From Andalucia godoyi And28 (Eukaryota > Protista > Jakobida), in assembly GCA_009859145.1 (NCBI GenBank), contig VRVR01000048.1, positions 1 through 64,000 on the forward strand: a DNA stretch of 64,000 nucleotides. The letters run 5' to 3'. The notes under the pieces are model-generated. The model had not been told where the DNA came from, searched no databases, and saw only the letters and a program-made list of their open reading frames with translations. This document shows positions 4,947 to 34,117 of the stretch, piece by piece. Each line of letters starts with the position of its first letter. Position 1 is the stretch's first letter. The position numbers were made by a program, and so were the translations under genes.

Positions 4947-7511
4947 ATGATGCCGTCGGACGTGCTTCTGGAGGCGAATGAGGAAAGTGTGCTCGAGCTG
5001 CTCAAAGGGGAACGGAATGAAGAGAAACTCTCCAGGCTGAGATCTTTTGTCCTTGCACGCCCATTGATGGACTCTGTCGGGAAGTTTCTTATCGACAGCT
5101 ATGCCAGCTCTGACAATCCTTCAGAGTCCGTTCGGTTGTGCAAAGAATGCGTTGCCAACGACTTTCGGGCTACATGGGCCTGGAATCATCTGTTGGCATA
5201 TCATTTGCAAAACTGGGACCCCGACGAGGCTCTCCACGCTGCGCAAGGGCTGCTGAAAGCATCTCAGGACTCCGCAGCGCTGCGTGAGACAATGGCCGCC
5301 CTATTTTTTGTCAAGGAACAGTACGTGGCTTCTCGAAAGAGTCTCCAAGTATTTAACTCCGATTCGGAAGCATCGAGCATACTGAGTCGTCTGCTGGCAG
5401 CCCGGTTTGGAGAAGTCGGTCAGTTGATCGAACAAGTCCATGCCTCTCCATCTTCGTCTTCGTCTTCGTCTTCTTCTTCTTCTTCTTCTTCTTCTTCTTC
5501 TTCTTCACAGCCCTCAGCTTCTGCATCGTATTTCTTGGCATTGGTAATGCACATTCAGATTCAGCTCTTGATCCATTCGGGCGATGTGGGCAGAGCTGGT
5601 CCGTTGCTCTTCGCAGCTGTGGATCACGTGGAATCCTTTCTAGATGCTTCCTATTCCAATTCGTTAGCGGCATTTCAGCTCTTGTTTTCTCTGTACCTCA
5701 CCTGCCGACTACTCTATCCTAGTATTCCTGCATACACTGTGCTGTCGTATCTTGAGAAAGGCAGACGACTGATGGAAAGGAAGCGTCCGTTTCTGCAGAA
5801 CGCGTCGCGAGAGTCTTCGGCTCTCCTGTCAATCAATCTTCTTGTCCTGTTGGATGAAATGCATCGATTGTATGAAAAAACCGGGGATCATATGGAACTT
5901 GGGTCTTTGGATCGTGAAATGCGCGCTGTTGTTGGGACGTTGTTTGCTGAAAACGCGCATTCGAGTACTGTTTTACTTGTTTGTGGCGTTTTTGCTTCGG
6001 ATTCCGAACAGCGAATCCGGTACCTTGTCCTCGCTTCCGAAATAGAGGAATCTCCGTTGTGCTTGTCGCTGCTTGCGCTGGAATACTTGCGCCTTTTCGA
6101 AGTTTCGAGCGACTGCAAGTATGCGCTTCTTGCAAGACAACTCGCGAGCAAAGCACAGTCATCGGATCCAACATCGGTTATCCCTTGGTTGGCGGTTGCT
6201 CAAATCAACCTTTGCAATGCCAAGAACTGTGTGGGCATGGATCAACAACAATCTGCTTGCACTCTCGCATTCAGGGACTCAGTGAAGCACGCCTGTTTGT
6301 TGCTCATGTCGGATTCTTCGTATGCATTCGAAAGCTTCGGCTCGGGTGTTTCGCTTCTTCGTTCCTACTTTGTTCGCTCTGCCCTTCCGAGGCTTGTTGC
6401 AGAGCTAGCGCAAATTGGGTTCTCGTTGGGCAAGGACGGAATACCCATTCCCGAGTTATTGTGGATTGTCGAAGTTGCTCTGCGATTTGATCCGGAAAAT
6501 TGCGACTTGCTGCTGTACAGTGCTACGTTGAAGCGCATGGTAGGTCGGTATCATGCAGCGGCAAAGGTCTACCAAGCTCTGTTTTCGATGCCTTCTTTTC
6601 CGTCGTTTCCAAAGAATCTGGTAAGCGTGCTAGCGTGCTCCGACACGTGGACCGTCCTCGGGCGATCGGACATTTCTTTGTCTTTGCTGGAAAACAATCG
6701 AGAAACAATGATGCAACAGGATCCCATCTCATTTTTGCACTGTCTTGCGCATTCTGCGGTTGCTGCGAATGATCTCATTTTGGGAGCAACCTGTTTGACG
6801 CAGGTCGTGCAAGCCACAGAAGGCAAAGCGGCGGAACCTTGGTGCGATCTCGTGCGTGTGTACTTGAAATTCAATGCCGCTGACGAAGCATATACGACAT
6901 GCAAATCACTGTTGGAATCGCATCCGAACAACGTCAGTGTGAAAATTCTTTGGTGCGATGCTCTCCTTCACCGGCAGGACTTCAATGCTTGTATACAGTT
7001 TGCGGAATCAGCAGGTCTCGTCAAGCAAAAGGCGCGAGCGTTGAAGCAGGCTGGCAGGACACAGGAGCTTGTGCAGGTGCTTACGGAAATGCTGGGACCC
7101 CGTCAAAGCTTGTCTTTTGCAGACCAAATAGACATTGTGCAACTGATGAGCGAGGTCTGTGAAGATGCTCTTGTGATCGGCAGGTCTTCCCTTTCTTCTG
7201 AGGACGCACTGTCCTTGCATTTTCAGTTTGAAGAATTGGCGTTTTCCGTGACTCCGTCGTCGCAGAAAGACATTATCAAGCGTTGCAATAGAGATTCGCT
7301 CCAACTTGCCTCATTTTATTCCCATCTTGCGTCCCTTTATTACGGGATATACCGCAGCGCGATGACCGAGAGCTCCGCAGACGTCCGGGAACGTGCAGCT
7401 GACATGAGTTCTGTTGCGCTGTCCTTTGCATCGCATGCCTTGATGTACGACCCAGTTCTAGCAGGACGTCGAGACAAAATGATTGACATTATTAAGAAGT
7501 GTAGTTCCTGA
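4947..7511 (+). CDS. TPR-like alpha-solenoid protein (possibly SKI3/TTC37-related)
   Basis: ATG at 4947; repeated TPR-like helices (WAWNHLLAYH, AQSSDPTSVIPWLAVA, ALRFDPEN, ESHPNN); poly-Ser insert. Confidence 0.7.
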   Translation: MMPSDVLLEANEESVLELLKGERNEEKLSRLRSFVLARPLMDSVGKFLIDSYASSDNPSESVRLCKECVANDFRATWAWNHLLAYHLQNWDPDEALHAAQGLLKASQDSAALRETMAALFFVKEQYVASRKSLQVFNSDSEASSILSRLLAARFGEVGQLIEQVHASPSSSSSSSSSSSSSSSSSSSQPSASASYFLALVMHIQIQLLIHSGDVGRAGPLLFAAVDHVESFLDASYSNSLAAFQLLFSLYLTCRLLYPSIPAYTVLSYLEKGRRLMERKRPFLQNASRESSALLSINLLVLLDEMHRLYEKTGDHMELGSLDREMRAVVGTLFAENAHSSTVLLVCGVFASDSEQRIRYLVLASEIEESPLCLSLLALEYLRLFEVSSDCKYALLARQLASKAQSSDPTSVIPWLAVAQINLCNAKNCVGMDQQQSACTLAFRDSVKHACLLLMSDSSYAFESFGSGVSLLRSYFVRSALPRLVAELAQIGFSLGKDGIPIPELLWIVEVALRFDPENCDLLLYSATLKRMVGRYHAAAKVYQALFSMPSFPSFPKNLVSVLACSDTWTVLGRSDISLSLLENNRETMMQQDPISFLHCLAHSAVAANDLILGATCLTQVVQATEGKAAEPWCDLVRVYLKFNAADEAYTTCKSLLESHPNNVSVKILWCDALLHRQDFNACIQFAESAGLVKQKARALKQAGRTQELVQVLTEMLGPRQSLSFADQIDIVQLMSEVCEDALVIGRSSLSSEDALSLHFQFEELAFSVTPSSQKDIIKRCNRDSLQLASFYSHLASLYYGIYRSAMTESSADVRERAADMSSVALSFASHALMYDPVLAGRRDKMIDIIKKCSS
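5451..5506 (+). repeat. (TCT/TCG)n microsatellite encoding poly-Ser
   Basis: Directly visible trinucleotide run inside the CDS. Confidence 0.95.
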
Positions 7512-7528: not shown

Positions 7529-8776
7529 CTATTTTGCATTTTGCCGATTTGCTATTTTTGTTCTCTTCTTCCCTGGATCTCCTGCGTCAAATGCTCGAGT
7601 CCCGCCGTCGACTGCGTAGCCATCTTTTGCAGCCAAAGACAATGAAAAAATCCTCAAGTGAATCTGGGTTTGTAGCAGACCCCGTGCGCGGGTAATGCAA
7701 TTTCTGTGTGTAAACAACATATGATCCTTCACAAGGACAGGTACCTCCCGCTGACGGCACAAAATGACAAGAAGAACGTGTGCGGACAGCGGATAGTTTG
7801 CGAGAAGAGTTTGGTAAAATTCGTCAAAGCAAACAGGATTGCTCGATTGCATCGCGCGCACATCCAATATGAGCTGGCGGATGTTCCTCCAGCAAGCAAC
7901 GACTGCGAGAAATGGAGCTGCAGCAACCTCGAAGTATCTTCTTGACACAGCTCGGCGCAGCGGATCCACATCATGGCTGGGAGTCAGATATTGATGCATC
8001 AGATGCGGCAGTGCAGTACAGCTGCAATGAGCGACATCCAGCAAGTATTGCAACAGTACATTGATGTCGCACATCATCTGGGCTTCTCCAGTCATGCGCA
8101 TCATCCCCGCAGGCCACTGCACACCGTGCCCGAGATTCCGACGCACCTCCGCAGCCAATGCCTGGCAATGATCGCTCAGTAATGATGCGTAATGCGCTTG
8201 GAATTTGTGTTGCACCGCCACGGAAGCACGCTGAATTGCCTGTGCCTCCGTCATCCTGTACCCTTTCGCAAGCTGAAACAAGCAGCGGGCGGCGCCCGAC
8301 AACAGCGGCGATGTTCCACATGCAGATCCTGGTTCCGCCCCGTCAACAGGAAGTGTCCGACGAACTCCACACATCGTAAGAACCCAGTGCCCAATGTTCT
8401 GCAATGCGGCGTACGAATCCGAGGCCACCGATAATGCATGTTCCGATCGATAGGCGGGGTCTAAAACTTGAGACAGAGTGTACAGCGAATCGATCTGTTC
8501 CAGGCAACGGAGAATAAAACTTCCTGCATCCTCCCGACCGCCATCCCCGCTATCACCCACGAGACTCGAGCTCCTGCTGGTGCCTATTCCGCGGCGTCTG
8601 ACGTTGCCCGCGGACGCAGTTCCCTTCCTAGGGGTCTCTGAAGGCGGTGTCGTGATGTCTGCCCATTCTGGAAAAAAACGACTTGACACTGATTTGCTGA
8701 CCAGTCTGCCATTCTGAAGATCCACATATTGGAACTCAAGTTCCGTACTGCCTGGCCCAGCGAGCGGATCGTGCAT
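7529..8776 (-). CDS. Hypothetical protein; may have upstream exon(s)
   Basis: Long ORF with first ATG at 8776 (MHDPLAGPG). A GTGAGT donor-like site at 8927-8922 hints at a 5' exon. No family recognised. Confidence 0.7.
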   Translation of the reverse strand: MHDPLAGPGSTELEFQYVDLQNGRLVSKSVSSRFFPEWADITTPPSETPRKGTASAGNVRRRGIGTSRSSSLVGDSGDGGREDAGSFILRCLEQIDSLYTLSQVLDPAYRSEHALSVASDSYAALQNIGHWVLTMCGVRRTLPVDGAEPGSACGTSPLLSGAARCLFQLAKGYRMTEAQAIQRASVAVQHKFQAHYASLLSDHCQALAAEVRRNLGHGVQWPAGMMRMTGEAQMMCDINVLLQYLLDVAHCSCTALPHLMHQYLTPSHDVDPLRRAVSRRYFEVAAAPFLAVVACWRNIRQLILDVRAMQSSNPVCFDEFYQTLLANYPLSAHVLLVILCRQREVPVLVKDHMLFTHRNCITRARGLLQTQIHLRIFSLSLAAKDGYAVDGGTRAFDAGDPGKKRTKIANRQNAK

Positions 8777-8883
8777 CGTAGGGACAGAAATCCCATGCAC
8801 TTCCACCTCGCTCGAAAAGAGGAAATAGAGATCCCCCAAGCAAAAAAATGAAAAACAAAAAACAAAAAACAAAAAACAAAATG

Positions 8884-18677: not shown

Positions 18678-18705
18678 TCGCCATAATGCTGAAAAAATAA
18701 TTTTA

Positions 18706-18764
18706 CAACTGACCGACTGGGAGTCAACAGAAAAATTTATTGGAGGCAACGTGGGTATTTTTGG
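18706..18764 (+). repeat. Left terminal inverted repeat
   Basis: Reverse complement of 20978-21036 with 2 mismatches (18738, 18749). Confidence 0.95.
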
Positions 18765-18924
18765 GGCTAACTGCTGCTACAGTCAGCGAAAAATAAAATT
18801 TGGCGCGCACGCCGTTTGCGAGGGAGACACAAAAAACCGAAAACCAAAAAAATCATGTTCTCTCATCTGCCTCTTCAATTTTTGAGAGAATAGTTGATCA
18901 GACATTGAAAACGTACGTCCGGGA

Positions 18925-20865
18925 ATGGAGAAGACCACGGAAACCATGACGCAAGAGAGTCCAGACTCTGAATCGTCGCCCGAAATCAAGAGCAACGCGG
19001 CTCAAAACGCAGAAGCAAATGCAGCCGAACCCGCCCGGGACCTCTCAGAGGATCCCTCCATATTTTCAACTTCAGCGTGGAAAGACGCGTGCCGTGGACC
19101 TTTTGCAGATGCTGAGAAGGAGCTTTTTGAAGAAAGAAGTGCTCCTGAGACTTCTCCAGCCCGCCAACCATTCACCGAGATGCACCACAATGCTGTTCGT
19201 GTACCTTCACTAAAGCGAAGAGGCACGCAGGCTGTGGCAACTGCTTCATCGGATACGAGTGTTCCAAACCAGCTTACAAAACGGATTATGCCAGATGATG
19301 AAAGCGTGATTCCAATCCCCGCCGCGGATGTGAAAGCTATTCCAGAGCTGCAAGGACTGCAACTGAACCAACTCAAGTCGAAGAAACGTCTTTCGCTGGA
19401 TGCTGCAAAGGAAGTTCGGGAAATGAAAAGAGCGCGAAAGGTCCAAGAAAATGATGCAGCTCGGATGCTAACGATGCAGGCAGCAGTGCGAGAGACGTTG
19501 GCAAAGGCAGCCCTTGCAGAAGGAGAGCGAAAGGAAGCTGTTGAAAAAGCGAAGGAGAACCTGGCGCAGACGCCAATCAAGCCTACTGGAGTTGTATCGC
19601 AGGAGGACCGGAAGATCATTTGGAATCAGATTAACTTCATGGGAACTCGTGCGAGCGAAGTTGCGAAGATGCTAGAGAAAAACATCAATACTGTCCGTAG
19701 CGCATGGAGGAGCATGCGCCAGAGACAACTGCAAGGATTGGATCCTGTAGAAATGCCGCTGAGAGGAGGGAACATCCCTGCGTGTCGGAAACCAAGGATG
19801 TTATCCGAAGACCAGCTACTGTGGTCGGCAAGAATGATGGTCTTGGACAACACTCTGCAGTACAAAGATCTTGCAAACAAGGTCGTATCGCAGTTTCCGG
19901 AGTTGCAGGCTGTGAACAAAGACCATTTGGCTCAGAATCTGCAAAAATACTTGCATAACAACCTTGGATTTCGACTGGCAGATTTCCTGACGGTCCCCGT
20001 CTCTCGCAATCTGGAGCGCGCTATTCAAGCTCGAAGCGAGTATGCAGCGAAAATGCTTGGCGACAAAGAAGATCAGTACCAAAGAGCAATTTTCATCGAC
20101 GAGACGCCGTTCAACGTTGATGTCCACCCCGAACAAGGAATCTCCCTTCAAGGGTGCCGTCCATTGCTTGCGATTCACAACATCCAAGCGCCGAGCCTGA
20201 CTTTGATCGCAGCCGTTGACAGAAATTCGTTCGTCTATTATGAATGCTACACAGGCGGCATCAATGGAGCGACATACGCCCAATTTCTGAAGAATCTCTT
20301 CCAGCGTCTCGAACGAACGGGAAGAATCCTCGAGGGTCAAAAACAAATGATCATTCACGACAACGTTCCAATGCATACGGCGAAGCAAACAGTGGTCCCT
20401 TTGCTGCGCGAGTGGGAGTCCAAGATTGAAGTGGAACAGCTGCCACCGTATTCTCCCTTTCTTAATCCTTGCGAAGAAGTATTCGGAATGTGGAAGTTTC
20501 AGTTCTGTCAGATTGTCCGAGAAAAAGTTGCGACACATCCAGCAGGGGTTGCAGCACTGGTTCAACAAGCAGCGAACCAGATCTCGTCCAACAACATCAT
20601 GGCCGCATACAAGCATGCACGTTCCTTCTTTGTGCAGTGTGTGAAAAAGATTCCAGTCAATTCACACCAAATTCTGGATGGAATCCACGAAGGCGACGAA
20701 AAAGAGGAAATTCTCCTTCGGAAGTACAAGGAGTGGGGCATCGATCTGCACTCAGATGTCCGACAAGACCAAGTTGAGGCCGGAACAACAGAGAACAATG
20801 AAGCAGAGTCAGCACGTACTGCAAAGAATGATGCCTGCTTCGTACCCGTGTTCACACAACCATAG
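18925..20865 (+). CDS. DDE transposase (DDE_3-type) with long N-terminal extension
   Basis: HTH-like ASEVAKMLEKNINTVRSAW, then IFIDETPFN, IIHDNVPMH and LPPYSPFLNPCEE; 37 residues between the second D and E. Confidence 0.93.
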   Translation: MEKTTETMTQESPDSESSPEIKSNAAQNAEANAAEPARDLSEDPSIFSTSAWKDACRGPFADAEKELFEERSAPETSPARQPFTEMHHNAVRVPSLKRRGTQAVATASSDTSVPNQLTKRIMPDDESVIPIPAADVKAIPELQGLQLNQLKSKKRLSLDAAKEVREMKRARKVQENDAARMLTMQAAVRETLAKAALAEGERKEAVEKAKENLAQTPIKPTGVVSQEDRKIIWNQINFMGTRASEVAKMLEKNINTVRSAWRSMRQRQLQGLDPVEMPLRGGNIPACRKPRMLSEDQLLWSARMMVLDNTLQYKDLANKVVSQFPELQAVNKDHLAQNLQKYLHNNLGFRLADFLTVPVSRNLERAIQARSEYAAKMLGDKEDQYQRAIFIDETPFNVDVHPEQGISLQGCRPLLAIHNIQAPSLTLIAAVDRNSFVYYECYTGGINGATYAQFLKNLFQRLERTGRILEGQKQMIIHDNVPMHTAKQTVVPLLREWESKIEVEQLPPYSPFLNPCEEVFGMWKFQFCQIVREKVATHPAGVAALVQQAANQISSNNIMAAYKHARSFFVQCVKKIPVNSHQILDGIHEGDEKEEILLRKYKEWGIDLHSDVRQDQVEAGTTENNEAESARTAKNDACFVPVFTQP

Positions 20866-20977
20866 CCATGGAGCACAATTGCAAGACACTAAGGGATAAA
20901 ATGCTTTCGAGAGAAAGCAGACGCGGAACGTTGGGAATTGTTAATCGGTACAGCTGCTCAACAAACCCCTGTCAACT

Positions 20978-21036
20978 CCAAAAATACCCACGCTGCCTCC
21001 AATTAATTTTTCTGTTGACTCCCAGTCGGTCAGTTG
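20978..21036 (-). repeat. Right terminal inverted repeat
   Basis: Inverted match to 18706-18764; followed by TA. Confidence 0.95.
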
Positions 21037-21282
21037 TAAATAATAAAAAAACTGCTGCTACCTTGCCAGCTGTACAACCCCCACCTATATTGAGAGGAAG
21101 TTGACAGTCGTCGAATTCGGCATGGGACATTCCTTCGTGCGTCCACCGAGGATCATTGAGCGAAGTATGAGAATGTTTGTGAAACCAGGTTTTTCCCGTC
21201 TTTACGAAGGAAAACAGAACACAACAAAACACAACAGAACAGAGAAAAGAACAGAGAAAAGAAGGCTTCGACTGGCGCATCC

Positions 21283-24200
21283 ATGACTGTGAGTGCGAAA
21301 GCGGTATCTGTTCTCTCAGAAGATGTGGATGTGATTGTCGATGTTTCTGCAAGAAAGCTGCATTGTGTTGCGCGCCTGACTTGTGCGCCTTCTGGAGCAT
21401 CGCTGCCCAACAGCCTGTCGCTACATGCCCGTCTCTTGGCCATTAAGAGCGTCAAAGTGAATGACACGTACTCCAAGGATTATGTATATACGGGTGAATC
21501 GACAGGACTTTCGCCCGATAGGATCATTGACTTGACTAAGGTGATTCACAAGTACTCGGCCTGCTGGGATCCGTCTCTGGAAATTCCGCTCAAGGGAGTC
21601 TCTGGGCAGTTTGTTATTGAAGTCCAGTATGAACTGAAGCATTTCATTGGAGGAGTGTTCTGGCACCAGTTCGAAGAGGAGTCGCTTGTGTATACAGACG
21701 ATGCACCATTGGCAGTGCGAAATTGGCTCCCGTGCGTGGATGAGCTCGGGTGCCACTCCAAGTTCTCGCTCTCAATATCGGTGCCGGAAGATTGGACTGC
21801 TTGCGCATCGGGTACCCTTGCCCAGATTCTCCCTGCTGCTGGAAATTGCAGGAAGTGGGTGTTCACTCCTACCCCAAGAGAAGTGCATGCTTCCCGCTTC
21901 GGATTTTGTGTGGGCACGCTTCCGTCCCACATTTCCAAGACCATCACAGGAACTTCGGACAGAGACTCGGAGAAGGTCTTTGTCAATATGTTCGGAACAA
22001 GCCCCATCACGGATGTGGCCGCCAAACTGGACTTTGCTGCAACTGCTGCATCGTCATTTTTCTCATTTGTTCCTTTGTTTCTTGGAACAACCAGCACGCG
22101 TGTTCTTGGCGGCAATTCGCTGTCCATTGTGTTTACAGATTCCATTCCTGGCTCATTTCTGTCGTTTGCAGGACTTCTTCTTGTGCATCCACGATTCTTG
22201 CCGGCACATCTGGAGTCCCTCGATCGGGTGAAAGCCGCGCATCAGGTTATGTTTTCCGGAATGGCGAGATGCATCCTTCGCACGCATTTCAGTGCATCCC
22301 ATTTCCATTCATTGTGGCTGGAAGAGTTTGTGTCGTACATGATCTCGGATGCGCTCCTTATTCATCTTTATGGTTTCAACTGGTTTGCGTGGATGATATC
22401 CGACGAAGAACAGAAGTTCTATGGGTACACCCATCCTCATGACTTCCTTCTGGCTCGCTGGCAAACGTTCTTGTTTGATGGCCCCATTGTGGAATCTGAC
22501 TTTTTCCCTTCTACACGCTCGTTGTCTGTTATGGCCTTCTCTGCCGCGTCTCGGTCAAGTCCGTTGTATTCTCAGAAGTTTACCCATCCGTCGGAATTGC
22601 TGACCCCTCGTCGCTCTCTTCTCTGCCGTCTCGTAGCCTACTACTTTCGAAGGACCCTGTTTTCCAGAACGTCTTCAGATGCGGTGTATCAACGAACACT
22701 GCAGGTCTTTTTTCACGGCGCTGTTAAAGCGGTCAATGCTGCGCATACCACCATTCCGTGGGATCGACTCCTGCATACCGATCGCTTTTTTCAGACGGTA
22801 GTTAAGGTCGGAAAGATGGAGTCTTCCTCTTTTGACGAGGATTTGATGAGTCGATTCACTACTCGATTCGTCCGCAACATTCCGGTGTTTCCTGTGGTTC
22901 GTGCAGCGTATGTCTTCGATGCAAAAGCCAGAAAACTGCGAGTGGCGATGAACGTGTCCTCCAACGAGCAGCTTATTGCGGATGGACCCCTAAGCATTGT
23001 TCTTCGCGAGCGTACGGTCATTGCGTCACATGCTACTGAAATCCGCGGAGAACGGTGCACCGCGGAAATGGATGTGAAAAGCAAGACTCCGACCCATGAT
23101 ATTTCCATGCCAGATCACCCGTTGCTCAAGGACCAGATTGCGTTGTGGAACGCCTCAACATCCCATCCACGATTTCCGGTGTACTACGTGCGACTGGATC
23201 CACTGCATGAACTTGGATATCGATGCATTGTCCGCCAGTCCTTGCGATCGCATTTGTTGGAGCTCGTGGATGCTGATGCTGATATTTTGACATTGAAAGA
23301 TGGTATTGATGGTGTTGTTCGCTTGCTGCTCACAGCGGAAGGCAAAGGAGACGGGCATTTCGTTACGGAGCTGGAAACCCGAGATGTCATCAAGACGCAT
23401 GAGTTTGGACTGTTGCAGGTTTTGCAACGCATCGTTGCGATGAAGGACCAGTATCCTGCCGTCCTTCGATGCCATGCTATTCGCGGGTTGGCACAGCTTG
23501 CTCCGGTCTATCCCAAAGCTCTGGAGTCCTTGCTAGGTCTATTTTCATCGGCGGTCTCAGCGCAATCTGATAACATGGCTATCGAGGACAAGTGGTCTTC
23601 AGACATGATTCTCGTACAGTGTGCATTCTCGTTGTCGAAAGTGGGCGGAAAAGAACCATTCGCTCGCCTGTGGGAACTCGTGCAACGAGTCTGGAACAAA
23701 GGGGATATAGCGGAGGATGTTCGTGCAAACTTGATGGTTGCTTTGTTTCTGTGCCATGTGGAAGAACAGGCGTTCGTGAGAGTGAAACTCGGCTTATGCC
23801 AGAAAATTCTGGAAGGTGCATCGTCCCCGGGGAAGAGTCGTGTGCATGCCGTTTTTGTCCAATGTGTTTTGCAACACCTTCCCTTTTTGCTTTCCTATTC
23901 AAATGATCGGTCATTTCTCCCAGAGTTTCTGGAGCGTGTTGTTTGTCCCTTTGCTCTCGTGGGTCACGACGCGGATACTCGTATTTCCGCGTGCTCCTGT
24001 CTTCTTTCCTTGACTACCGATGAGCTCACCACCGTGCAGTTCATCTTGGATGGCATTGATGTGGTGTACTCCACGCCCTACATTCGAGTTCTATTTATGC
24101 TGATCCTCGCCAACTACGACTCCTTTACCATTCCGTTTTTGGAAACTGTTCGTTTGAAGAGTGAGTTCTCTTATTTTAGTCAGCAAGTTTTCCAGCGGTT

Positions 24201-26031
24201 CATTTCTTCTCCAGTTGCAGAAGTGGATTCCCGTTTCTTCTTTGCTTCCGCTCGCTTCTATTCCCACTTGTTCGGTTTCCATCTACCGCCCTCGGTTTCA
24301 GGAGTTGCGGTTCCGAACTGGGTCGAAAAGGTTGCGGCGTTTCCAAAAGATTTGGTTGTCGTTCAGCCGCTTTCTCAGCCAGAACGGGCAGTTTCCGTCC
24401 CGTTTAAAAGAGAGAGGGATCCGAATTTCGTAGAGGAAAAGGAGAAAAAGATTGCCAAGCGACCTTCTATTTCGACGTATGCTCGCACGCCGGCGGCCGA
24501 TGGAGCTTCGTCTGTGGTGCCGTTTACACCAGCTGTTCCCAGCACTCCAGGTGCAGCTCGAGTAGGGACTTATGTCCCCAATCCGTACTCGCTTCGCTTT
24601 GTGCTCAAAATCGGACGTCACTGGGGAACCATGTTTTTGGATCCTAAGAATCCTCTGTCGAAGATTGTGGAATCCTCGATCCCCTTTGGGCTGGATGCAA
24701 TTTGGTTTGGAAAGTCCCTACTCCGTGTGCCGTTTCACATGCATCCACGGCTGCCAGACTGTTACACAACGCTTGGTAATTCAAATATGGTGACTCATCT
24801 CACGCAAGGCCAGGTGGCCTTCTGGCCTGCGAAGGAAGGATTTGCGGAAATTTTGATTCACGTTTCTGACAGCTCGCAATCGAGATACCAGCTTTTGGAA
24901 GAATGTTATCTTATTGGCACGATGGCGATGGGCTTTGATTACACCATTCCGGAAACGCCCGAAATCAGCGGGTGTTTGCCGGTACCGTGGCCAGGGATCT
25001 ATTCTAATGGCAGCCTCAACAAGTTTGCGAAAACCGTGGCAAGAGAGGCAACTTCCTCCGGCCTGTTGTTGGTTTCCATATGTCGATTTTCAGAGGTCCG
25101 CTTGTTTGTGAGAGGATTGGAATTCGGCATCGAAGTTGTACCGTCGGTGAAGGGCACGATCGCGTATGAAAACATCTGTGTCAACACGTTGGTGAGTCCT
25201 GGAGTTCTTTATCCTTGGACGAATCACGATTGTCACCTGGCGTATTTTCCGCTGCTACTGAATACGCCGCATGTTGAGAAAGCAAAAAACCAGGAACTGG
25301 TGAGGACCATTCTCACTCCTGGCGAAGTTGCATTGTGGATCCCAGCTGCACCGCCGGATGCGCCACTTGTTCCTCGCTCGGTCTCTCTCTGTGTTGGCTA
25401 TGGACGCTCCGTCTTTGACGATCATCTGTGTAGACTCAAGGCGCACGAGGACTGTGAGCTGTTTGGACGGTGCTATTCTCTGCGAGGTCTCGGGTCTGCG
25501 GTAGAGGAGCTAAAAACAACGCATGATCTGGACTTGTGCATGGTAGCTGCCCCTCCAAACTTGTCTTTTTTGCGAATTTCTGTCCCGGATTCGGATTTGG
25601 TGGTGGATGTGGAGGTGTACACGAACTTTCAAACGGGTCGAGATTTCATCGATTTTGTGCGAAAGAATTCTCAGCTTTCTCTGTCCTTGTCTCGTTTCCA
25701 GGAGACGCTCGTGTTTTGTCCGTTGCAAAACGCGACCGATGACGATTTTGAGGAGGTTTTTGAGGAATTCCCGCGGTCTTATCTCCGGGAAGGCGATATC
25801 GCCCTGTGCTGCTCAAGAGAGACACTCATCTGGAATCTTTATATTGGCTACAATGCGCTGCATCACCGCATTGACATCGATGAAAGTGAAGTGTGTCGGG
25901 TCTTTGGAAAGATGCTTTTGTGGTCTACAGAGAAGAAGGACAAGTTGAAAATGGCCCCGAATGGCACTCGAATCGTCATTGACGTGATGGACGTTATGCG
26001 CGGCTGGCCCGATGCGACACCATCAGTTTAA
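21283..26031 (+). CDS. TAF2: TFIID subunit 2 (inactive M1-aminopeptidase fold) with C-terminal triple cyclophilin-like repeats
   Basis: VRNWLPCVD...W..CASG; HEXXH absent at the expected site (followed by LWLEEFVSYM); YVRLDPLHE...RQ; HEAT-like region; three C-terminal repeats. Confidence 0.78.
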   Translation: MTVSAKAVSVLSEDVDVIVDVSARKLHCVARLTCAPSGASLPNSLSLHARLLAIKSVKVNDTYSKDYVYTGESTGLSPDRIIDLTKVIHKYSACWDPSLEIPLKGVSGQFVIEVQYELKHFIGGVFWHQFEEESLVYTDDAPLAVRNWLPCVDELGCHSKFSLSISVPEDWTACASGTLAQILPAAGNCRKWVFTPTPREVHASRFGFCVGTLPSHISKTITGTSDRDSEKVFVNMFGTSPITDVAAKLDFAATAASSFFSFVPLFLGTTSTRVLGGNSLSIVFTDSIPGSFLSFAGLLLVHPRFLPAHLESLDRVKAAHQVMFSGMARCILRTHFSASHFHSLWLEEFVSYMISDALLIHLYGFNWFAWMISDEEQKFYGYTHPHDFLLARWQTFLFDGPIVESDFFPSTRSLSVMAFSAASRSSPLYSQKFTHPSELLTPRRSLLCRLVAYYFRRTLFSRTSSDAVYQRTLQVFFHGAVKAVNAAHTTIPWDRLLHTDRFFQTVVKVGKMESSSFDEDLMSRFTTRFVRNIPVFPVVRAAYVFDAKARKLRVAMNVSSNEQLIADGPLSIVLRERTVIASHATEIRGERCTAEMDVKSKTPTHDISMPDHPLLKDQIALWNASTSHPRFPVYYVRLDPLHELGYRCIVRQSLRSHLLELVDADADILTLKDGIDGVVRLLLTAEGKGDGHFVTELETRDVIKTHEFGLLQVLQRIVAMKDQYPAVLRCHAIRGLAQLAPVYPKALESLLGLFSSAVSAQSDNMAIEDKWSSDMILVQCAFSLSKVGGKEPFARLWELVQRVWNKGDIAEDVRANLMVALFLCHVEEQAFVRVKLGLCQKILEGASSPGKSRVHAVFVQCVLQHLPFLLSYSNDRSFLPEFLERVVCPFALVGHDADTRISACSCLLSLTTDELTTVQFILDGIDVVYSTPYIRVLFMLILANYDSFTIPFLETVRLKSEFSYFSQQVFQRFISSPVAEVDSRFFFASARFYSHLFGFHLPPSVSGVAVPNWVEKVAAFPKDLVVVQPLSQPERAVSVPFKRERDPNFVEEKEKKIAKRPSISTYARTPAADGASSVVPFTPAVPSTPGAARVGTYVPNPYSLRFVLKIGRHWGTMFLDPKNPLSKIVESSIPFGLDAIWFGKSLLRVPFHMHPRLPDCYTTLGNSNMVTHLTQGQVAFWPAKEGFAEILIHVSDSSQSRYQLLEECYLIGTMAMGFDYTIPETPEISGCLPVPWPGIYSNGSLNKFAKTVAREATSSGLLLVSICRFSEVRLFVRGLEFGIEVVPSVKGTIAYENICVNTLVSPGVLYPWTNHDCHLAYFPLLLNTPHVEKAKNQELVRTILTPGEVALWIPAAPPDAPLVPRSVSLCVGYGRSVFDDHLCRLKAHEDCELFGRCYSLRGLGSAVEELKTTHDLDLCMVAAPPNLSFLRISVPDSDLVVDVEVYTNFQTGRDFIDFVRKNSQLSLSLSRFQETLVFCPLQNATDDDFEEVFEEFPRSYLREGDIALCCSRETLIWNLYIGYNALHHRIDIDESEVCRVFGKMLLWSTEKKDKLKMAPNGTRIVIDVMDVMRGWPDATPSV

Positions 26032-26147
26032 ACGATGCTTTAGATGCGGTGCCTCTTTTTCTTTTTTTCTTTTTTTTCCCCCCTTTCTTGTTGGCGTTTT
26101 CTGGACTGTCAGTTTCCTTCTTATTCTTCCCTCCTTTCCCCCGCTGT

Positions 26148-27116
26148 TCAGAGTTTCGATAATGCAAAGTCTGCATCCAGCTTGAGCATCATTTTTTCCT
26201 TGTCAGACGCAGAGGGCACTCCGCACAGAGCAATGCTCTTGGAGGCCGGCATTCGATCAAAGACAAAATCACCAGGCTTGACACCATTCCGCGCCAGCGC
26301 TGCATCTGGAGCAGCACACAGCCACACGAGCGTGTCTGCTCCTTGTGGCGGCTCGCGGAGCTTTCCCTCGAGCTTCTTTCTGAAATTCGGCAGATGCTCC
26401 TGCACCAACGGCGTGTCGACCCATCCTGGATGGCAAGAATATACATGTGCATTCTCGGCAGCAAGCACCTCGGCGAGTGCAACAACGGCCCTCTTGTTCT
26501 TGGCGTAGACTTTCAGCCCGTCCCACGGTTCAAAGTTCTTGCACTCCAGGTCATTCGCATCCAGAACCTCTGTGAGCATTCCACCCGAGCTCACCATGAT
26601 GATCCGTCCCGAAGACGCAGACACGGCCTCCTGCAACTCGCGAGCCAGCACAAATACGCTCAGCACGTTGGTTGCATACGACGCATCAAACCCCTCGTCT
26701 GTCGCCGTCCGTTTTGCATAGTGGTTCGCCGCATTCAGCACCAATCCGTGCAGTGGCCATTTCTCCGATCGGAACTGCTCCGCAAAGGACAGCACAGACT
26801 TTATGCAGCTCATGTCTGCAAGATGCACTCGCACGTCCGCATTCGGCACGTCCTCGATGATCTTCAGTCTGGCTGCCTCGGCCCTCTCTCGATTGCGACA
26901 CAGCATATGCACAACCGCCCCCAGCGACGCGAGTCCCCGAGCAGTTTCGAAGCCGATTCCAGAGTTTGATCCAGAAACGATAAAGTGACGATTCGACAAG
27001 TCCACATGCAGATCGGCAGCGTCGAATTTGGCCGCGTTTCGGAGAAATCCTTGTTTGGTGAAGTTGCGGTACCCACGGACGCCGAACACAAGCGTTTTGT
27101 AAAATTGAAACACCAT
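26148..27116 (-). CDS. DHRS12: Short-chain dehydrogenase/reductase, DHRS12-like, ending in SKL
   Basis: SGSNSGIG, VSSGGM, YAKNK, HPGWVDTP, QGADTLVWL; ATG at 27116. Confidence 0.85.
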   Translation of the reverse strand: MVFQFYKTLVFGVRGYRNFTKQGFLRNAAKFDAADLHVDLSNRHFIVSGSNSGIGFETARGLASLGAVVHMLCRNRERAEAARLKIIEDVPNADVRVHLADMSCIKSVLSFAEQFRSEKWPLHGLVLNAANHYAKRTATDEGFDASYATNVLSVFVLARELQEAVSASSGRIIMVSSGGMLTEVLDANDLECKNFEPWDGLKVYAKNKRAVVALAEVLAAENAHVYSCHPGWVDTPLVQEHLPNFRKKLEGKLREPPQGADTLVWLCAAPDAALARNGVKPGDFVFDRMPASKSIALCGVPSASDKEKMMLKLDADFALSKL

Positions 27117-27493
27117 CCCTTCCTCGCTTGCCTGAATGCAGTATAACCTGTATGTTTTCTTTCTTTTTCCTTTCTCTTTTCTTTTTTTTTTTTTTTCGTT
27201 TGTACCCACAAAGCTGATGATGCTCGATCACTACTACTATTATTATTATTTTTTATTTTATTTGAACTCGGTGTATGCTGTGCACGCGCAAAAAATCCAG
27301 CCAAAAAGCGTGAAAAGTGATGTTCGACTCCCCAAGCATCATTTGACGCTGAGATGTTCAAGTCGGGAGTCGGGGCCCCACTCGCTGCCAAATCGAGGCA
27401 AATTCCCTCTTGGTCTGGTATTTTCGTGCTCTGCAGTCTTCCCGACTTGTGGTGCGAACCTGGATTTTTCGCCGGGCGTGTCGAGTGTGAATT

Positions 27494-27522
27494 GTGGACT
27501 GCGGACTGCGGACTGCGGACTG
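27494..27522 (+). repeat. (GCGGACT)n heptamer repeat, 4 units, ending just before the NUP210 ATG
   Basis: GTGGACT followed by GCGGACT x3. Confidence 0.9.
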
Positions 27523-27525
27523 TGT

Positions 27526-30500
27526 ATGATGGGCCAATTGGGTGTTTTGGGTGTTCTGTTGGTGCTGACCAGCTGGGTTGCATCGGCACGGATGACTGCT
27601 CTTTCGACGCTGTCCCACACCGATGTTCTTCTGCCGTCAGACGTGGGAAATGTGAGTCTGATGATTCACGGTCATCACGGCTCGTGCTTAACCTGGAGTC
27701 TACTGTCTGGACACTCGTACTTGGTCTTTCGTCCTGGGTGCGATACTGCTCTGCTGTCCACAAAAGAAGCCAAAGTACATGCTGCTCTCGGTCAACCGCC
27801 GACTGGCGCGACGACGGTTGGGCTGCTGAAGGGCGGATCGGACTCGGTCACGGTCGTGCTTTCTCCGGTCGCCTCCATTGAGCTTTCGACGACGCGGCGG
27901 TTCTTGTACCGTAACGAGCCTGAAATTGTCCGTGTTATAGCAAAGGACCACCAGGGGAACACGTTTTCTTCGTTGGACGGAGCTCCCATTCGCTGGTCGA
28001 TTCTGGAAGACGACCACGCAGACGCACAGCTAGTGTCTGTAGACTCTGAGTCTGCTGATTGCATACTGTGCACAGATCGCATTACTGTTCTTGCAAAACT
28101 GATCGGTCGGGTGAAGCTGCAAGCTTGCTACAACTACAAGAACGAAAACCAAATGATGTGTGCTGCTGTCGAGTTTCGTTTTATAGAGAACGTGCACATT
28201 CTGCCTGAGGTGTATCGGCTGTTCCCTGGTGCAAGTGTCCACTACACCAGCAGCAGTGGGTCTGGTGAAGATCTCAAGAAACGGGATCTCGAGTGGAAGT
28301 CCTCCAACGACTCGGTCGGTACCATTTCAAAGCACGGCCTTTTTGAGGCACAACATGCCGGCATCACACGTGTATCCTTGTGGGATTTGCGAATGGGCCT
28401 GTCCTTGTCGTTTGTGGATGTGCTCGTCGCTCCGATCTCATCACTGCAAGTGTTGATCAACCATTCTCCCGCGTGCCAGGATCCAAGCGTTCCCAAGCCC
28501 GAGGCTACCGAAACAACCCTTATGCAAGGCATTGTGTATCCGTTAACTCTGATTCCTCTGGATGACCAGCGTCTTCCTTTTGATCCAGTTCTTGCAGATC
28601 AAGCAATGATTGAATGTTCTCCTTCCGTGTCGGATGTCCGGTGCGATGCTGGTGATAGCGTGTTGCAGAGAAGTCTGTCGGCCAGAACCCCGGCGTCTTT
28701 CCATCTTTCGTTGCATTTAAAGAAGTTTCGCGGAGCATACGGACTGACCAGCACCGTCCCCTTCACGGTCGAGGAACCTGTGCGGCTGCTTCCAAGGGCC
28801 GTTGTGCTTCCTCTGCTGTCGACGTTTGAAGTTGCTGTGCAGTCCGGGCAGCACGGGATTCGTCGGCTGGTGTCAACGGAAGGATCGACTGTGGATGCAG
28901 ATTCCACGAAATTGGTGGTTCGAAGCCAGTCCACTGTCGGACAATACAGGATAAGCGTGTGGAGTGAGAATTATGTGTGCAACCGAGATGCGGTCTTGTT
29001 GGAAGTCGAAGACGTTTCCTCCATCATCGCGGACAAAGGACCTCGAATGGCAGAGCTGTCCGAGCGCCTTCCAGTTGTTCTTAGCTTCTTTGATCATCGT
29101 GGACGGCATTTTCATAATACGTCTTCCATTTCAGTTTCATTTTGGGCAACCTCCAAGGACAGCCCACTCCGCAGCAAAGCAATCCCGGCAATGAGGATTT
29201 CCGAGAGGACATGGGAGTTGTTGCCAGCTGTTTCGGAGGGTCGGCATCGCGTCTCTATTCGAGCTTTTGAGTCTCCAAAGGGTCAGATAGAGGTTATCTA
29301 TTTTCCATCGCCAACATTGTCCAAATTGAATCCGCTGTTAGCACCAAGGGCTCACTACACGTGGCAAGTGCACGGAGGCCCTCTTCCATTTCTGCTTTCT
29401 CAGGACAAGATGATGGTAAGGGGAACAGAGATCCAGTGCATGTCAGTGCAGGAAATGCCAATACCAGCGAATGTGTCCCTGGTTGTGACACTGCAATCGA
29501 TTCCGGATGCAATACCATATTCTCTACATATCCCAGGACAGTATCGGTGCCACCCCATCCATCACAGCGAGCATTTCTTGTCCTTTTCTCAAAACGGGGA
29601 TCTGGCACTTCAACGAGATGTCGAAGGAAGGTACCTAACGTGGGTGGACGTGCCGATTTATGCTCGCGCACGTCTTCGGGACGCGCACGATGAGGAATTC
29701 GATGCTGTTGGGTTTGACACCTCGTCGTCTGTGTTGACGTTTGGTCATCCGGGCAACGTTCATCATGCAATACATGAACAATCTGTAGCATTTCGCGTCA
29801 TCGGGGGTCTTGTGGTGACACCGGCATCCATCAAGGTGTTTCCCTCTGATGGATGCGCGGTGCAGATTTGCTCCACGGATCATCGGGCCATCGAAGTGGT
29901 TTCTGGTCTCCCTGAGAGCTGGTCTGCGGACTCCAATGAAGGCGGGAGATGTTCACTGTTGAAGAAGAGTCATGCGGCCGGATTGGGCTTTCAGGAATCA
30001 ACCTACAACGTGAAATTCGTCGATTCCATGTGGCCGTCGAGAAAAATCTACCCATCCTCGTCTCTCGTTGCGCACGCACTCCTGTCCGTCGGCCTTCCCA
30101 AAAAGTTGAGCTTGAAATTTCAAAATGGCAATTTGGAAAGACACGTCCTGCAGGACTCACAGTTTGGTATTGCAGTTACATCAGACATCGAACACTGTTT
30201 TTCAATCGATTCTGCAAATGTCGTGTTCGTGTATGATCAAAATATTCTTCACATCGACTCTGCACACAAGTTCGCAGCACGGACTCCCGGATCAACGGAG
30301 ATATATGCTCAAATGGGAACCATCACATCGAATAAGATCGTCGTCCATGTATTGCCGACTTCACCTTTGGGTGAACGGGACATCTTCCTCTGGAAAGGGC
30401 ATTCGATGTTGCTCCCGATTGACCCAGGCCTGCTCAAATCCAAGTGCATTCCATCGTTCAACGTCTCGGATCCGCACATTGTCCGTTTTGTACGCCACAG

Positions 30501-31581
30501 CACCATTGAGGGTGTTGCTGTTGGTCGGGCGAAAGTCGTTGCTGTTCTGGAATGTCCTGGAGACATACGCATTTCGTCTCCTGAAGTGATGGTCACGGTC
30601 GACGACGTGGAGGAAGCAAGCTTTCTTCCTCGCGGTCGTGTTTTCAAGTCTGGATCGGCCATTGATGTGGTTCCCTTCATTCGAGATGCATTTGGCGATG
30701 AACCGTTTGTCAGTGGTCGCTTTGTGTGGTCTCCGAGCTCGTGTGCTGAAGGAGGCCCTGGGGTTCTGTTGAATGAGACTGTTCTGCAACTTCACGTATC
30801 CAACAGGAGCAGCTCGGTCGATTGCCATGTGCAGTTTACAACCACCCTGCGTGGTCGAGAGTTTGTTATTGACAAGAGGTTCTCATTTGAACGAGTCCTA
30901 TCGGGTGTTCCTCGAACTCTCTATCTGGGCACGAACGGCAGCGTGACGTTTCAAACGAACTTTCCCGTCAGTGTATACGTTCTCCATTCTTCGCAACCCG
31001 ATTGCTTTAGCTTCCATGTGGAAGACCGAACAGTGACCATTGTCGGCGGGAGCGTACCGTGCGACCAGTCTCTGAGACTGTCGCTGCACAAAAGCAACCT
31101 CAGCACGAATGCTGAAATTCTAACCGTTTTTCAACGAAAACCGATGTCCTTCTCATACAGGAAGACCTCCCGAGCGGCAGTGATGCTGGACGAAGAAGGC
31201 AACATCCTGGATGGTTTGCATCATCTTCATCCCGTCGAGACGACCTTAGACGCAGGCGTCCTCCGGTTCGAGGGCATGCAGTTTTCAGAGTACTTGCAAC
31301 CGACTGCTGCTCTGCTGCCGGAAGCAGCCGGAGCAGTCCATGTGCTGGAGACTGCTCGAGAGCCTGCTTCCTTGGAAGAGACCACAGTTCGTCCGCCGTC
31401 GACCCTAACTACCATTGAGAAGCTCTCGTTTTGGACTAAAACTCAAAGGCCCTCCGTCCCGGTAGATCTTGTCCCGGCGGAAGAGCCCCAGGAGTGGCAC
31501 AAGACGAATGATCCTCTGTGGTTCTCGATTGGCATCTCGGCAGTAGTGATCTTGTCATTTTACGTCATTCGATTTCGCTGA
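27526..31581 (+). CDS. NUP210: Nuclear pore membrane glycoprotein gp210
   Basis: Signal peptide, DVLLP, GNTFSSLDG.PIRWSI, Ig-like/BIG2 repeats (WKSSNDSVGTISKHG; FNVSDPHIVRF), single C-terminal TM. Confidence 0.85.
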   Translation: MMGQLGVLGVLLVLTSWVASARMTALSTLSHTDVLLPSDVGNVSLMIHGHHGSCLTWSLLSGHSYLVFRPGCDTALLSTKEAKVHAALGQPPTGATTVGLLKGGSDSVTVVLSPVASIELSTTRRFLYRNEPEIVRVIAKDHQGNTFSSLDGAPIRWSILEDDHADAQLVSVDSESADCILCTDRITVLAKLIGRVKLQACYNYKNENQMMCAAVEFRFIENVHILPEVYRLFPGASVHYTSSSGSGEDLKKRDLEWKSSNDSVGTISKHGLFEAQHAGITRVSLWDLRMGLSLSFVDVLVAPISSLQVLINHSPACQDPSVPKPEATETTLMQGIVYPLTLIPLDDQRLPFDPVLADQAMIECSPSVSDVRCDAGDSVLQRSLSARTPASFHLSLHLKKFRGAYGLTSTVPFTVEEPVRLLPRAVVLPLLSTFEVAVQSGQHGIRRLVSTEGSTVDADSTKLVVRSQSTVGQYRISVWSENYVCNRDAVLLEVEDVSSIIADKGPRMAELSERLPVVLSFFDHRGRHFHNTSSISVSFWATSKDSPLRSKAIPAMRISERTWELLPAVSEGRHRVSIRAFESPKGQIEVIYFPSPTLSKLNPLLAPRAHYTWQVHGGPLPFLLSQDKMMVRGTEIQCMSVQEMPIPANVSLVVTLQSIPDAIPYSLHIPGQYRCHPIHHSEHFLSFSQNGDLALQRDVEGRYLTWVDVPIYARARLRDAHDEEFDAVGFDTSSSVLTFGHPGNVHHAIHEQSVAFRVIGGLVVTPASIKVFPSDGCAVQICSTDHRAIEVVSGLPESWSADSNEGGRCSLLKKSHAAGLGFQESTYNVKFVDSMWPSRKIYPSSSLVAHALLSVGLPKKLSLKFQNGNLERHVLQDSQFGIAVTSDIEHCFSIDSANVVFVYDQNILHIDSAHKFAARTPGSTEIYAQMGTITSNKIVVHVLPTSPLGERDIFLWKGHSMLLPIDPGLLKSKCIPSFNVSDPHIVRFVRHSTIEGVAVGRAKVVAVLECPGDIRISSPEVMVTVDDVEEASFLPRGRVFKSGSAIDVVPFIRDAFGDEPFVSGRFVWSPSSCAEGGPGVLLNETVLQLHVSNRSSSVDCHVQFTTTLRGREFVIDKRFSFERVLSGVPRTLYLGTNGSVTFQTNFPVSVYVLHSSQPDCFSFHVEDRTVTIVGGSVPCDQSLRLSLHKSNLSTNAEILTVFQRKPMSFSYRKTSRAAVMLDEEGNILDGLHHLHPVETTLDAGVLRFEGMQFSEYLQPTAALLPEAAGAVHVLETAREPASLEETTVRPPSTLTTIEKLSFWTKTQRPSVPVDLVPAEEPQEWHKTNDPLWFSIGISAVVILSFYVIRFR

Positions 31582-33091: not shown

Positions 33092-34117
33092 TCAAACCAC
33101 GGATACGTCCTGCTCTAAAGCCGCCAGAAAGGGTTCGGAAATGGGACCCACCGACATGTTGAATTTGCACACCAGTTCCTTGTCCAGCATCCCAACTGCC
33201 GGATACAGCGCTGGAATGGGTATCTCCCTCGTATCCATCACGCTTTCAAAGTCGCTTGCCGGGAACAGATCCTGGAAAACATGAAAACTTGCGACTTTTC
33301 CATAGGCAACGTTGCTGAAATCGCGGTTCGAACGAACGAGATTTCTCCCAGTATCGGTGTTTGGATGTACAGTACCGCCGACGAACACATGGATCACCAG
33401 CGGCCGATGGAGCACGTCGTCTCGGACAAACCCTTCAGGATAGCAGATGACCACCTTTGACATGGAGCTGGACGAGCAGTGAGAGCCAAACTTGACCCAC
33501 GATAGGCCGGGGATCAGAACAGAGAGCTTACTTGGACAGATGCCCATGGAGCATCGATTCCTGCCAGGAACAGAAAAGTGGGGCTGGCAACTCCCGACGA
33601 GCCCAAACACAAGTGTGCGGTGCATTCCGTCTAATGTAAACACAACACATTCTCCGGGAAACAGCGGTCGATCAAAGATTGCGCATCGTTCTCGCGTTGC
33701 TGAAGACATCCGTCCGAGTTTGAACTCAACGTCTTCCCAACGAAGAGCTCGACTGTGGTCCAGTGGATGCCCCGCACGCAATATAGACTCGACAATTGCG
33801 TTTCCAGGTTCAGGAAGGACATACTTCTGACCTCGAAAACGAAATCGGATGTTGTCCTCATCATCGCATTCCCGAGAAGCTTCGATGTTTAATTGCTTGA
33901 TTCTTTTCACAGTGTTTCGGAAGCGGTCCGTCAGTCGGATCCGCCAGTTCAAATACCCATCCGACTCGGTAATATTTGTCGCATACCCCACGATGATAAT
34001 GATCAGCATGTGGAACATGAAGGATCCCACGAGAACCGTAATGACCACGAAACAACTCTGATTGCACAGACTCGACATGCCGTCCGGATCCGCTCCCTTC
34101 GGCCCAGTGTCTCCCAT
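33092..34117 (-). CDS. Single-pass membrane protein with degenerate SPRY-like domain (Ssh4/Ear1-like topology)
   Basis: N-terminal TM; beta-rich region with LVFGLV...VPG and C-terminal LYPAVGM...CKFNM resembling SPRY termini. Confidence 0.55.
   Translation of the reverse strand: MGDTGPKGADPDGMSSLCNQSCFVVITVLVGSFMFHMLIIIIVGYATNITESDGYLNWRIRLTDRFRNTVKRIKQLNIEASRECDDEDNIRFRFRGQKYVLPEPGNAIVESILRAGHPLDHSRALRWEDVEFKLGRMSSATRERCAIFDRPLFPGECVVFTLDGMHRTLVFGLVGSCQPHFSVPGRNRCSMGICPSKLSVLIPGLSWVKFGSHCSSSSMSKVVICYPEGFVRDDVLHRPLVIHVFVGGTVHPNTDTGRNLVRSNRDFSNVAYGKVASFHVFQDLFPASDFESVMDTREIPIPALYPAVGMLDKELVCKFNMSVGPISEPFLAALEQDVSVV

Follow-up and report, generated by a model that had tools for sequence, protein, structure and literature searches.

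TAF2 is regarded as an architecturally stable subunit of TFIID. It is defined by an M1 aminopeptidase-like domain that lacks the GXMEN motif plus HEAT2-like repeats, and the only accretions described on this body are fungal bromodomains, of which one to six are found at the C-terminus (Antonova et al. 2019, PMC6672047). The proteins of the TM1367 family (PF04126) have a fold of the cyclophilin type that is considered atypical (PMC2954229). We analyzed a gene that appears to join the two, located in a stretch of 64,000 nucleotides of Andalucia godoyi And28 (contig VRVR01000048.1, positions 1 to 64,000 of the forward strand), hereafter called the window. The gene (21283..26031, plus strand) is one unbroken open reading frame (ORF) of 1582 codons and a stop codon, the C-terminal third of which spans positions 24580-26031. 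It likely encodes a divergent protist TAF2 followed by a basic linker and three diverged TM1367/PF04126 barrels, and the fusion likely predates the split from the organism that carries its single detected relative, a protein designated P0002. An initial annotation of the window, made without database searches, had called this an undescribed TFIID architecture, and we reach the same view: the survey of TFIID domain evolution places no TM1367-type domain on TAF2 (PMC6672047), and a full-text literature search for TAF2 together with cyclophilin-like returned nothing relevant. Both the protein and the fold family are known already, and it is their combination that is new. The accompanying remark that plant TAF2 carries a bromodomain has to be dropped, as Antonova et al. 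2019 (PMC6672047) assign the bromodomains of TAF2 to fungi and not to plants.

The identity of the N-terminal ~1000 residues was examined by comparison with Pfam and PDB. On its own, the window protein reached 25.4 bits for Peptidase_M1_N, against a cut-off of 25.8, and 20.6 bits for TAF2_3rd, against a cut-off of 27, and a PDB sequence search with it gave no match. Such sub-threshold scores leave room for a catalytically dead paralog of the M1 family with another role, in which case the fusion would be silent on transcription. A profile built from two sequences, the window protein and P0002, was far more discriminating. It matched human TAF2 at E 4.8e-18 over two stretches, residues 40-407 and 620-990, which correspond to its M1-like and HEAT portions, and it matched Komagataella phaffii Taf2 at E 9.2e-11, whereas M1 peptidases (LTA4H-like, glutamyl aminopeptidase) were matched at E 0.25-0.52 only. 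TAF2 therefore beats the best peptidase by 17 orders of magnitude, in the M1-like and the HEAT regions. The TAF2-specific family TPR_TAF2_C was detected above the Pfam threshold in P0002 (E 2.5e-21), so that its support for the window protein itself is transitive, through the ortholog. None of the motifs HEXXH, H...H and GXMEN was found in residues 1-700 of the window protein, and the loss of GXMEN is a hallmark of TAF2 (PMC6672047). Because the profile matches and the missing GXMEN motif fit the published definition, we assign this part to TAF2 and not to an active M1 peptidase, in agreement with the initial annotation, and we consider a dead paralog with another role very unlikely. Judged by these profiles, the N-terminal ~1000 residues are a highly divergent TAF2.

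We then compared the whole protein with its relative. When 1.84 billion representatives were searched exhaustively with HMMER, with residues 383-1582 as the query, P0002 was the sole relative returned besides the query itself. Word-indexed protein searches with the full protein or with P0002 recovered the query itself only, those with the C-terminal alignment recovered nothing, and a metagenome scan gave only a bacterial M1-peptidase locus (L002) that is irrelevant here. P0002 is a protein of 1697 residues encoded by one ORF on a 7.1-kb contig (L001; ~58% GC) from SRA run SRR15116022. Collinearity between the window protein and P0002 begins at residue 11 and holds up to the C-terminus, and all three repeats are present in P0002. 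BLASTP aligned the N-terminus at 25% identity (E 5e-35), the HEAT region at E 1e-9, and the repeat region at 24% identity over 469 residues (E 2e-12). The repeats are thus conserved between the two species as well as the TAF2 core is, which implies that the module is under constraint; the linker is not conserved. The linker of P0002 is longer and also contains basic patches, and its sequence is not conserved with that of the window protein.

The poor conservation of the linker is what one might expect if adjacent TAF2 and three-domain genes had been read through as one by an annotation or assembly artefact. Several results argue against this: the ORF extends over 4746 nucleotides with zero in-frame stop codons, the frame that bears the repeat motifs is the frame of TAF2, codon usage is uniform over the junction of TAF2 and repeats, and the identical in-frame arrangement occurs in the independent assembly of a species with only ~25% identity. 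The fusion is collinear in P0002 at this low identity and is therefore not an assembly accident; an artefact of either kind has a negligible probability. The 1582-residue product is also present in EukProt as a gene model, with an exact match, and the view that TAF2 and the repeats form one gene is retained. A triplication and fusion older than the split from the organism of P0002 best explains the shared arrangement of the two sequences. The basic linker that had been noted ahead of the repeats is present as well: the sequence FKRERDPNFVEEKEKKIAKRPS stands before the three repeats, and its basic patch (KRERD...KEKKIAKRPS) is a possible nuclear localization signal.

All the strings on which the claim of three tandem repeats had been founded are present in the C-terminal segment. 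The strand motif occurs as HLTQGQVAFW at residue 1172 (nucleotide 24796), ILTPGEVALW at residue 1343 (nucleotide 25309) and YLREGDIALC at residue 1500 (nucleotide 25780). It is followed in each repeat by a second motif (ILIHV at residue 1190, LCVGYG at residue 1369 and LYIGYN at residue 1519) and a third (YLIGTM at residue 1209, ELFGRC at residue 1392 and RVFGKM at residue 1539), and the distances among the three motif classes are alike in all three repeats. The expression G[DEQ][IV]A[FLVY][WC], which was drawn up after the motifs had been seen, has three matches in the 64-kb window when all six frames are translated, each of them in the C-terminal segment, against a chance expectation of ~0.09 per window and 3e-4 per these 483 residues. 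Pairwise similarity among the repeats of the window protein was weak by Smith-Waterman alignment (z=3 for repeats 1 and 2, z=1.2 for repeats 2 and 3, nothing for repeats 1 and 3), and a BLASTP self-comparison of the C-terminus gave zero off-diagonal matches. When ortholog-pair profiles were aligned with hhalign, all three pairs of repeats scored 22-28, against 11 ± 2 and a maximum of 17 for column shuffles; none of the 60 shuffles reached the observed scores, and repeat 3 scored 27.5-27.8 against repeats 1 and 2. Since these scores lie far above the shuffles, the three segments are homologous repeats, and the three-fold repeat is, on this profile evidence, real and very degenerate. The length of 120-140 residues given for them at first holds for repeat 1 (~127 residues) and has to be extended for repeats 2 (~155 residues) and 3 (~146 residues).

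The fold of repeat 1 was modeled with AlphaFold2 without templates, from the six-repeat alignment. The model has eight strands and two helices, with a predicted local distance difference test (pLDDT) score of 71.5 and a predicted template modeling (pTM) score of 0.69. A Foldseek search of PDB with this model ranked TM1367 at the top (1ZX8, chains C and A), with a probability of 1.00 and template modeling (TM) scores of 0.62-0.64 over 119-122 columns; the second TM1367 structure, 2KA0, gave a TM score of 0.62, and all matches listed outside the TM1367 family had TM scores below 0.3. The model supports repeat 1 as a closed beta-barrel of the TM1367-type cyclophilin-like fold with two helices, and modeling thereby upholds, for repeat 1 only, what had been proposed for the whole C-terminus. 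This match, a comparison made with a predicted structure, is independent of the motif-selected protein set introduced below, and no other single result supports the TM1367 assignment as strongly.

Sequence profiles extend the assignment to all three repeats. For reference, prokaryotic loci were retrieved with a DNA pattern encoding GDIAYWP, which gave at least 120 loci (L003-L122), and the extracted ORFs yielded 53 non-redundant proteins. All 10 ORFs tested were members of the Cyclophil_like group, nine of them matching PF04126 at E 1e-20 to 4e-44 and the tenth matching best to Cyclophil_like2 (PF18050, E 1.6e-27; PF04126, E 9.3e-9), and a representative member matched TM1367 (2KA0, 1ZX8) and 2NNZ in PDB. 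The six-repeat profile aligned with the profile of the 53 proteins at an hhalign probability of 81% (P 1.2e-5, score 36.1), and the 99 aligned columns span columns 14-112 of the 128 in the family profile. Of 200 column shuffles none reached this score (mean 10.5 ± 2, maximum 21), and the reversed template scored 9. When a sliding window was moved along the full alignment of the window protein with P0002, elevated scores were found only at residues 1103 (28.7), 1299 (31.4) and 1438 (21.9), against a background of 7.5-16 in the TAF2 body. Individually, repeat 1 scored 28.7 (P 1.6e-4, family columns 9-80), repeat 2 scored 28-31 (P 6e-5 to 3e-4, family columns 48-120), and repeat 3 scored 22 (P 0.004) over 89 columns that include the last strand (family columns 32-126 of 128). 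The prokaryotic members have WGDEIYF, GDIAYWPxG and FFGxTPxS as near-invariant polar motifs. All three repeats preserve G-[DEQ]-[IV]-A-x-[WC], with the tryptophan replaced by cysteine in repeat 3; W...YF is kept in repeat 2 only, which also retains the family motifs G-E-V-A-x-W and LC(V/I)G.G, and neither the acidic pair nor TPxS survives in any of them.

Several results weigh against the assignment. The repeats of the window protein matched nothing in Pfam, NCBIfam or the PDB sequences, even at E <= 10. The reference set was retrieved by the motif GDIAYWP, so that the template profile is biased toward that very motif, and when the motif was removed the N-terminal half of the profile gave P 0.06 and the C-terminal half P 0.01, both in the correct register. 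Repeat 1 was modeled from an alignment of only six rows and the Foldseek E-value is modest (1.8e-3), while modeling the entire C-terminus at once from a two-row alignment gave a pLDDT of 32, and that model was discarded; the usable structure model is therefore that of repeat 1, and repeats 2 and 3 are supported by profiles only. A helix in the inter-repeat segment (residues 1229-1269) is likewise predicted solely by a low-confidence model. Further sequence searches were equally unproductive: PDB searches with the C-terminus, the six-repeat profile and repeat 2 of P0002 gave nothing, tblastn of repeat 2 against plasmids returned noise only, and hmmsearch with the reference-set profile against the window protein and P0002 was marginal (4-6 bits).

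These points would be accommodated by a lineage-specific beta-rich repeat unrelated to TM1367, in which a convergent strand motif, G-[DE]-[IV]-A-x-W, biases the profiles and steers AlphaFold to a remembered fold. A short convergent motif sits poorly with an alignment that stays in register over 99 columns and with repeats that independently cover complementary parts of the family, and the wrong-half controls of the motif-removal test remained at background (P 0.64 and 0.71). Moreover, repeat 2 of P0002 matches Pfam's own Cyclophil_like model, which is independent of the motif-selected set, at profile positions 58-119 (E 4.8e-4 when scanned alone, which is below threshold; 15.3 bits and E 0.019 in the full-length scan, against a PF04126 gathering threshold of 27 bits), and the whole-domain TM score of 0.64 between the repeat 1 model and 1ZX8 contrasts with values below 0.3 for all competing folds. 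We therefore regard convergence as quite unlikely and assign the repeats, which align in register with the PF04126 profiles, to the TM1367/AF2241 type, as in the initial annotation.

Two other families were considered and rejected. The label DUF3830 (PF12903), which had been attached to the repeats alongside TM1367, is withdrawn: there was no Pfam match to this family, and no DUF3830 structure was among the top 50 Foldseek matches. Membership in the cyclophilin-type peptidyl-prolyl isomerases (PPIases; PF00160) was rejected on the same grounds, with no Pfam match at E <= 10 and no PPIase in the Foldseek top 50.

The assigned parts suggest the following architecture. The TAF2 body would consist of an inactive M1 aminopeptidase-like domain, an Ig-like domain and HEAT/TPR repeats, to which a lineage-specific C-terminal addition would have been joined: a flexible basic linker and then three tandem, strongly diverged Cyclophil_like (PF04126) beta-barrels. 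The barrels would still have their hydrophobic core and a strand with the motif G-[DE]-[IV]-A-x-W, with most of the invariant polar motifs (WGDEIYF, TPxS) gone. Because these near-invariant polar motifs are mostly lost, interaction modules without catalytic activity are to be expected, and the barrels are most likely non-catalytic protein- or peptide-binding modules in TFIID, which may be flexibly tethered at the TAF2 lobe on the periphery of the complex. A role as a prolyl isomerase, or in the ancestral binding of ligands, would be unlikely. The TM1367 family itself has no known function (PMC2954229), which counts against this part of the proposal and makes it a weak inference; in a literature search for the function of TM1367/PF04126, only structure papers were relevant.

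The origin of the repeats was considered from their composition. GC content, GC content at third codon positions and codon usage are the same in the repeats, the TAF2 body and the neighboring genes, and recent lateral transfer of the repeats was rejected on these measures. Since composition is uniform and the fusion is common to a very distant relative, any lateral acquisition would have to be ancient. The PF04126 family has a mainly prokaryotic distribution. An ancient transfer of a TM1367-family gene from a prokaryote to a eukaryote, followed by triplication and joining to TAF2 in a deep and sparsely sampled protist lineage, with barrels that still bind a small molecule or peptide and gate TFIID by a metabolite or partner, is conceivable and, in our judgment, unlikely; were it true, it would provide the first functional handle on the uncharacterized PF04126 family. 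Many of the prokaryotic PF04126 loci retrieved here (L003-L122, at least 120) are archaeal, including Methanomassiliicoccales/Methanomethylophilaceae, Woesearchaeota, Thermoplasmata, Bathyarchaeota and Methanosarcina, and the small prokaryotic proteins contain near-invariant WGDEIYF and FFGxTPxS motifs that resemble a conserved site.

The coordinates of the gene, its domains and its surroundings are collected in Table 1. The window has a compact eukaryotic look, with intron-poor genes on both strands and ~50% GC. Recognizable neighbors encode an AGC kinase, an ORC subunit and Vps51-like, RCC1 and NUP210-like proteins; those window proteins that were looked up and found are all singleton clusters with EukProt entries only, and tRNA and Rfam searches gave no match. 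The start codon of TAF2 is preceded, at a distance of 243 bp, by an apparently intact DNA transposon of the Tc1/mariner type, the sole copy in the window. Its 70-nucleotide terminal inverted repeats are 93% complementary, and its ORF encodes 646 residues; this ORF may be unannotated, because its exact product is missing from the protein collection. Long polypyrimidine/polypurine and (ACA/AGA)-rich tracts flank the TAF2-like gene on both sides. Downstream lie a minus-strand gene for a short-chain dehydrogenase and an ORF of 1481 residues that probably encodes a gp210-type nucleoporin, since it contains NUP210 Ig-like domain 2 and a Big_2 domain; its true start is probably further downstream than the mechanical 5' end, which overlaps the dehydrogenase gene. 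Six long ORFs, one of them of 1197 residues, have no Pfam match at E <= 0.01, which fits a very divergent, poorly sampled lineage. Besides the TAF2-like gene itself, no synteny was found between contig L001 and the window. On L001, a convergent neighbor gene (5596-7134, minus strand) overlaps the stop codon of P0002 by 4 nucleotides, which indicates an extremely compact genome; it encodes at least 512 residues, is Ser/Glu-rich, and has neither a Pfam match nor a counterpart in the window.

Table 1. Positions in the window of the TAF2-like gene, its predicted domains and the surrounding features
Feature	Residues	Positions	Strand	Basis
TAF2-like protein with C-terminal triple repeat, whole gene		21283..26031	+	ORF list; EukProt gene model; collinear with P0002
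M1 aminopeptidase-like N-terminal beta domain	42-198	21406..21876	+	Pfam Peptidase_M1_N, E 1.8e-5 (sub-threshold); within the human TAF2 40-407 alignment
Degenerate 'catalytic' M1-like domain, without zinc-binding or exopeptidase motifs	~199-400	21877..22482	+	Alignment to human TAF2 and P0002
TAF2 Ig-like third domain, weak match	537-644	22891..23214	+	Pfam TAF2_3rd, E 6.4e-4 (sub-threshold); same family matched in P0002
HEAT/TPR-like TAF2 C-terminal repeat region	~631-1003	23173..24291	+	BLASTP blocks to P0002; profile alignment to human TAF2 620-990
Pro/Ser/Ala-rich linker with basic patch	1004-1101	24292..24585	+	Sequence; poorly conserved
Predicted cyclophilin-like (TM1367/PF04126-type) repeat 1	1102-1228	24586..24966	+	AlphaFold2 model, Foldseek, hhalign
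Inter-repeat segment, short block PG.Y..GSL shared with P0002	1229-1269	24967..25089	+	Alignment
Predicted cyclophilin-like repeat 2, with insertions	1270-1424	25090..25554	+	hhalign profile evidence; Pfam match of P0002 repeat 2
Predicted cyclophilin-like repeat 3, most degenerate copy	1427-1572	25561..25998	+	hhalign profile evidence
Tc1/mariner-type transposon		18702-21040
Terminal inverted repeats of the transposon		18702-18771 and 20971-21040
Transposon ORF		18925-20865	+	Pfam DDE_3, E 5e-20
Polypyrimidine/polypurine and (ACA/AGA)-rich intergenic tracts		21200-21280 and 26040-26150
Short-chain dehydrogenase gene		26148-27209	-	adh_short, E 5e-21
NUP210-like ORF		27136-31581	+	NUP210 Ig-like domain 2, E 2e-9; Big_2 domain
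Long ORF without Pfam match		1379-2374	+
Long ORF without Pfam match		7529-8872	-
Long ORF without Pfam match		33092-34117	-
Long ORF without Pfam match		45149-46033	-
Long ORF without Pfam match		46630-47574	-
Long ORF without Pfam match		53633-57226	-

The impact of the finding is limited, since the organism is obscure, two of the three domains are supported at the profile level only, and the module belongs to a family without an assigned function. Within these limits, the architecture would place PF04126, a family solved by structural genomics and never assigned a role, in a defined eukaryotic nuclear context, and it would serve as a marker linking two highly divergent protist genomes.

Compared with the TM1367/AF2241 family (PF04126, formerly DUF369; 1ZX8, 2KA0, 2NNZ), repeat 1 shares the predicted fold and the domain length of ~125 residues, and the order of elements is common to both: the strand motif G-[DE]-[IV]-A-x-W comes first, then a hydrophobic strand with glycine at its end, and later an x-h-x-G strand. 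The members retrieved are single-domain prokaryotic proteins of ~120-130 residues, whereas three tandem copies occur here in a eukaryotic protein of 1582 residues; the near-invariant WGDEIYF and TPxS are largely lost, and no repeat of the window protein reaches the gathering score of the family. The classical cyclophilin PPIases (PF00160) have the same general eight-stranded barrel superfold. Unlike them, the repeats have no PPIase sequence or top-50 Foldseek match, and isomerase activity is not expected.

Human TAF2 (TFIID cryo-electron microscopy structures of the 7EGB series, 6MZL and 5FUR) and K. phaffii Taf2 (6HQA chain A) show the same domain order as the window protein, with an M1-like N-terminus without GXMEN, an Ig-like domain and HEAT/TPR repeats. 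The window protein differs from known TAF2s in its extremely low identity, which leaves it below Pfam thresholds when scanned alone, and in the missing HEXXH motif, which some TAF2s retain (PMC6672047). The C-terminus differs most: three predicted barrels stand here in place of the disordered tail of human TAF2 (bioRxiv 10.1101/2024.02.05.578926). The fungal bromodomains provide a precedent for lineage-specific tandem modules beside an invariant M1-like and HEAT body, but they have a known function, the recognition of acetyl-lysine, and are of eukaryotic origin, whereas the modules here belong to a family without known function. The barrels would sit where animal and fungal TAF2s bear a disordered tail or bromodomains, as their functional analogs in position, and a triple TM1367-type module there would be a second, unrelated instance in which the initiator-binding lobe of TFIID carries modules specific to one lineage.

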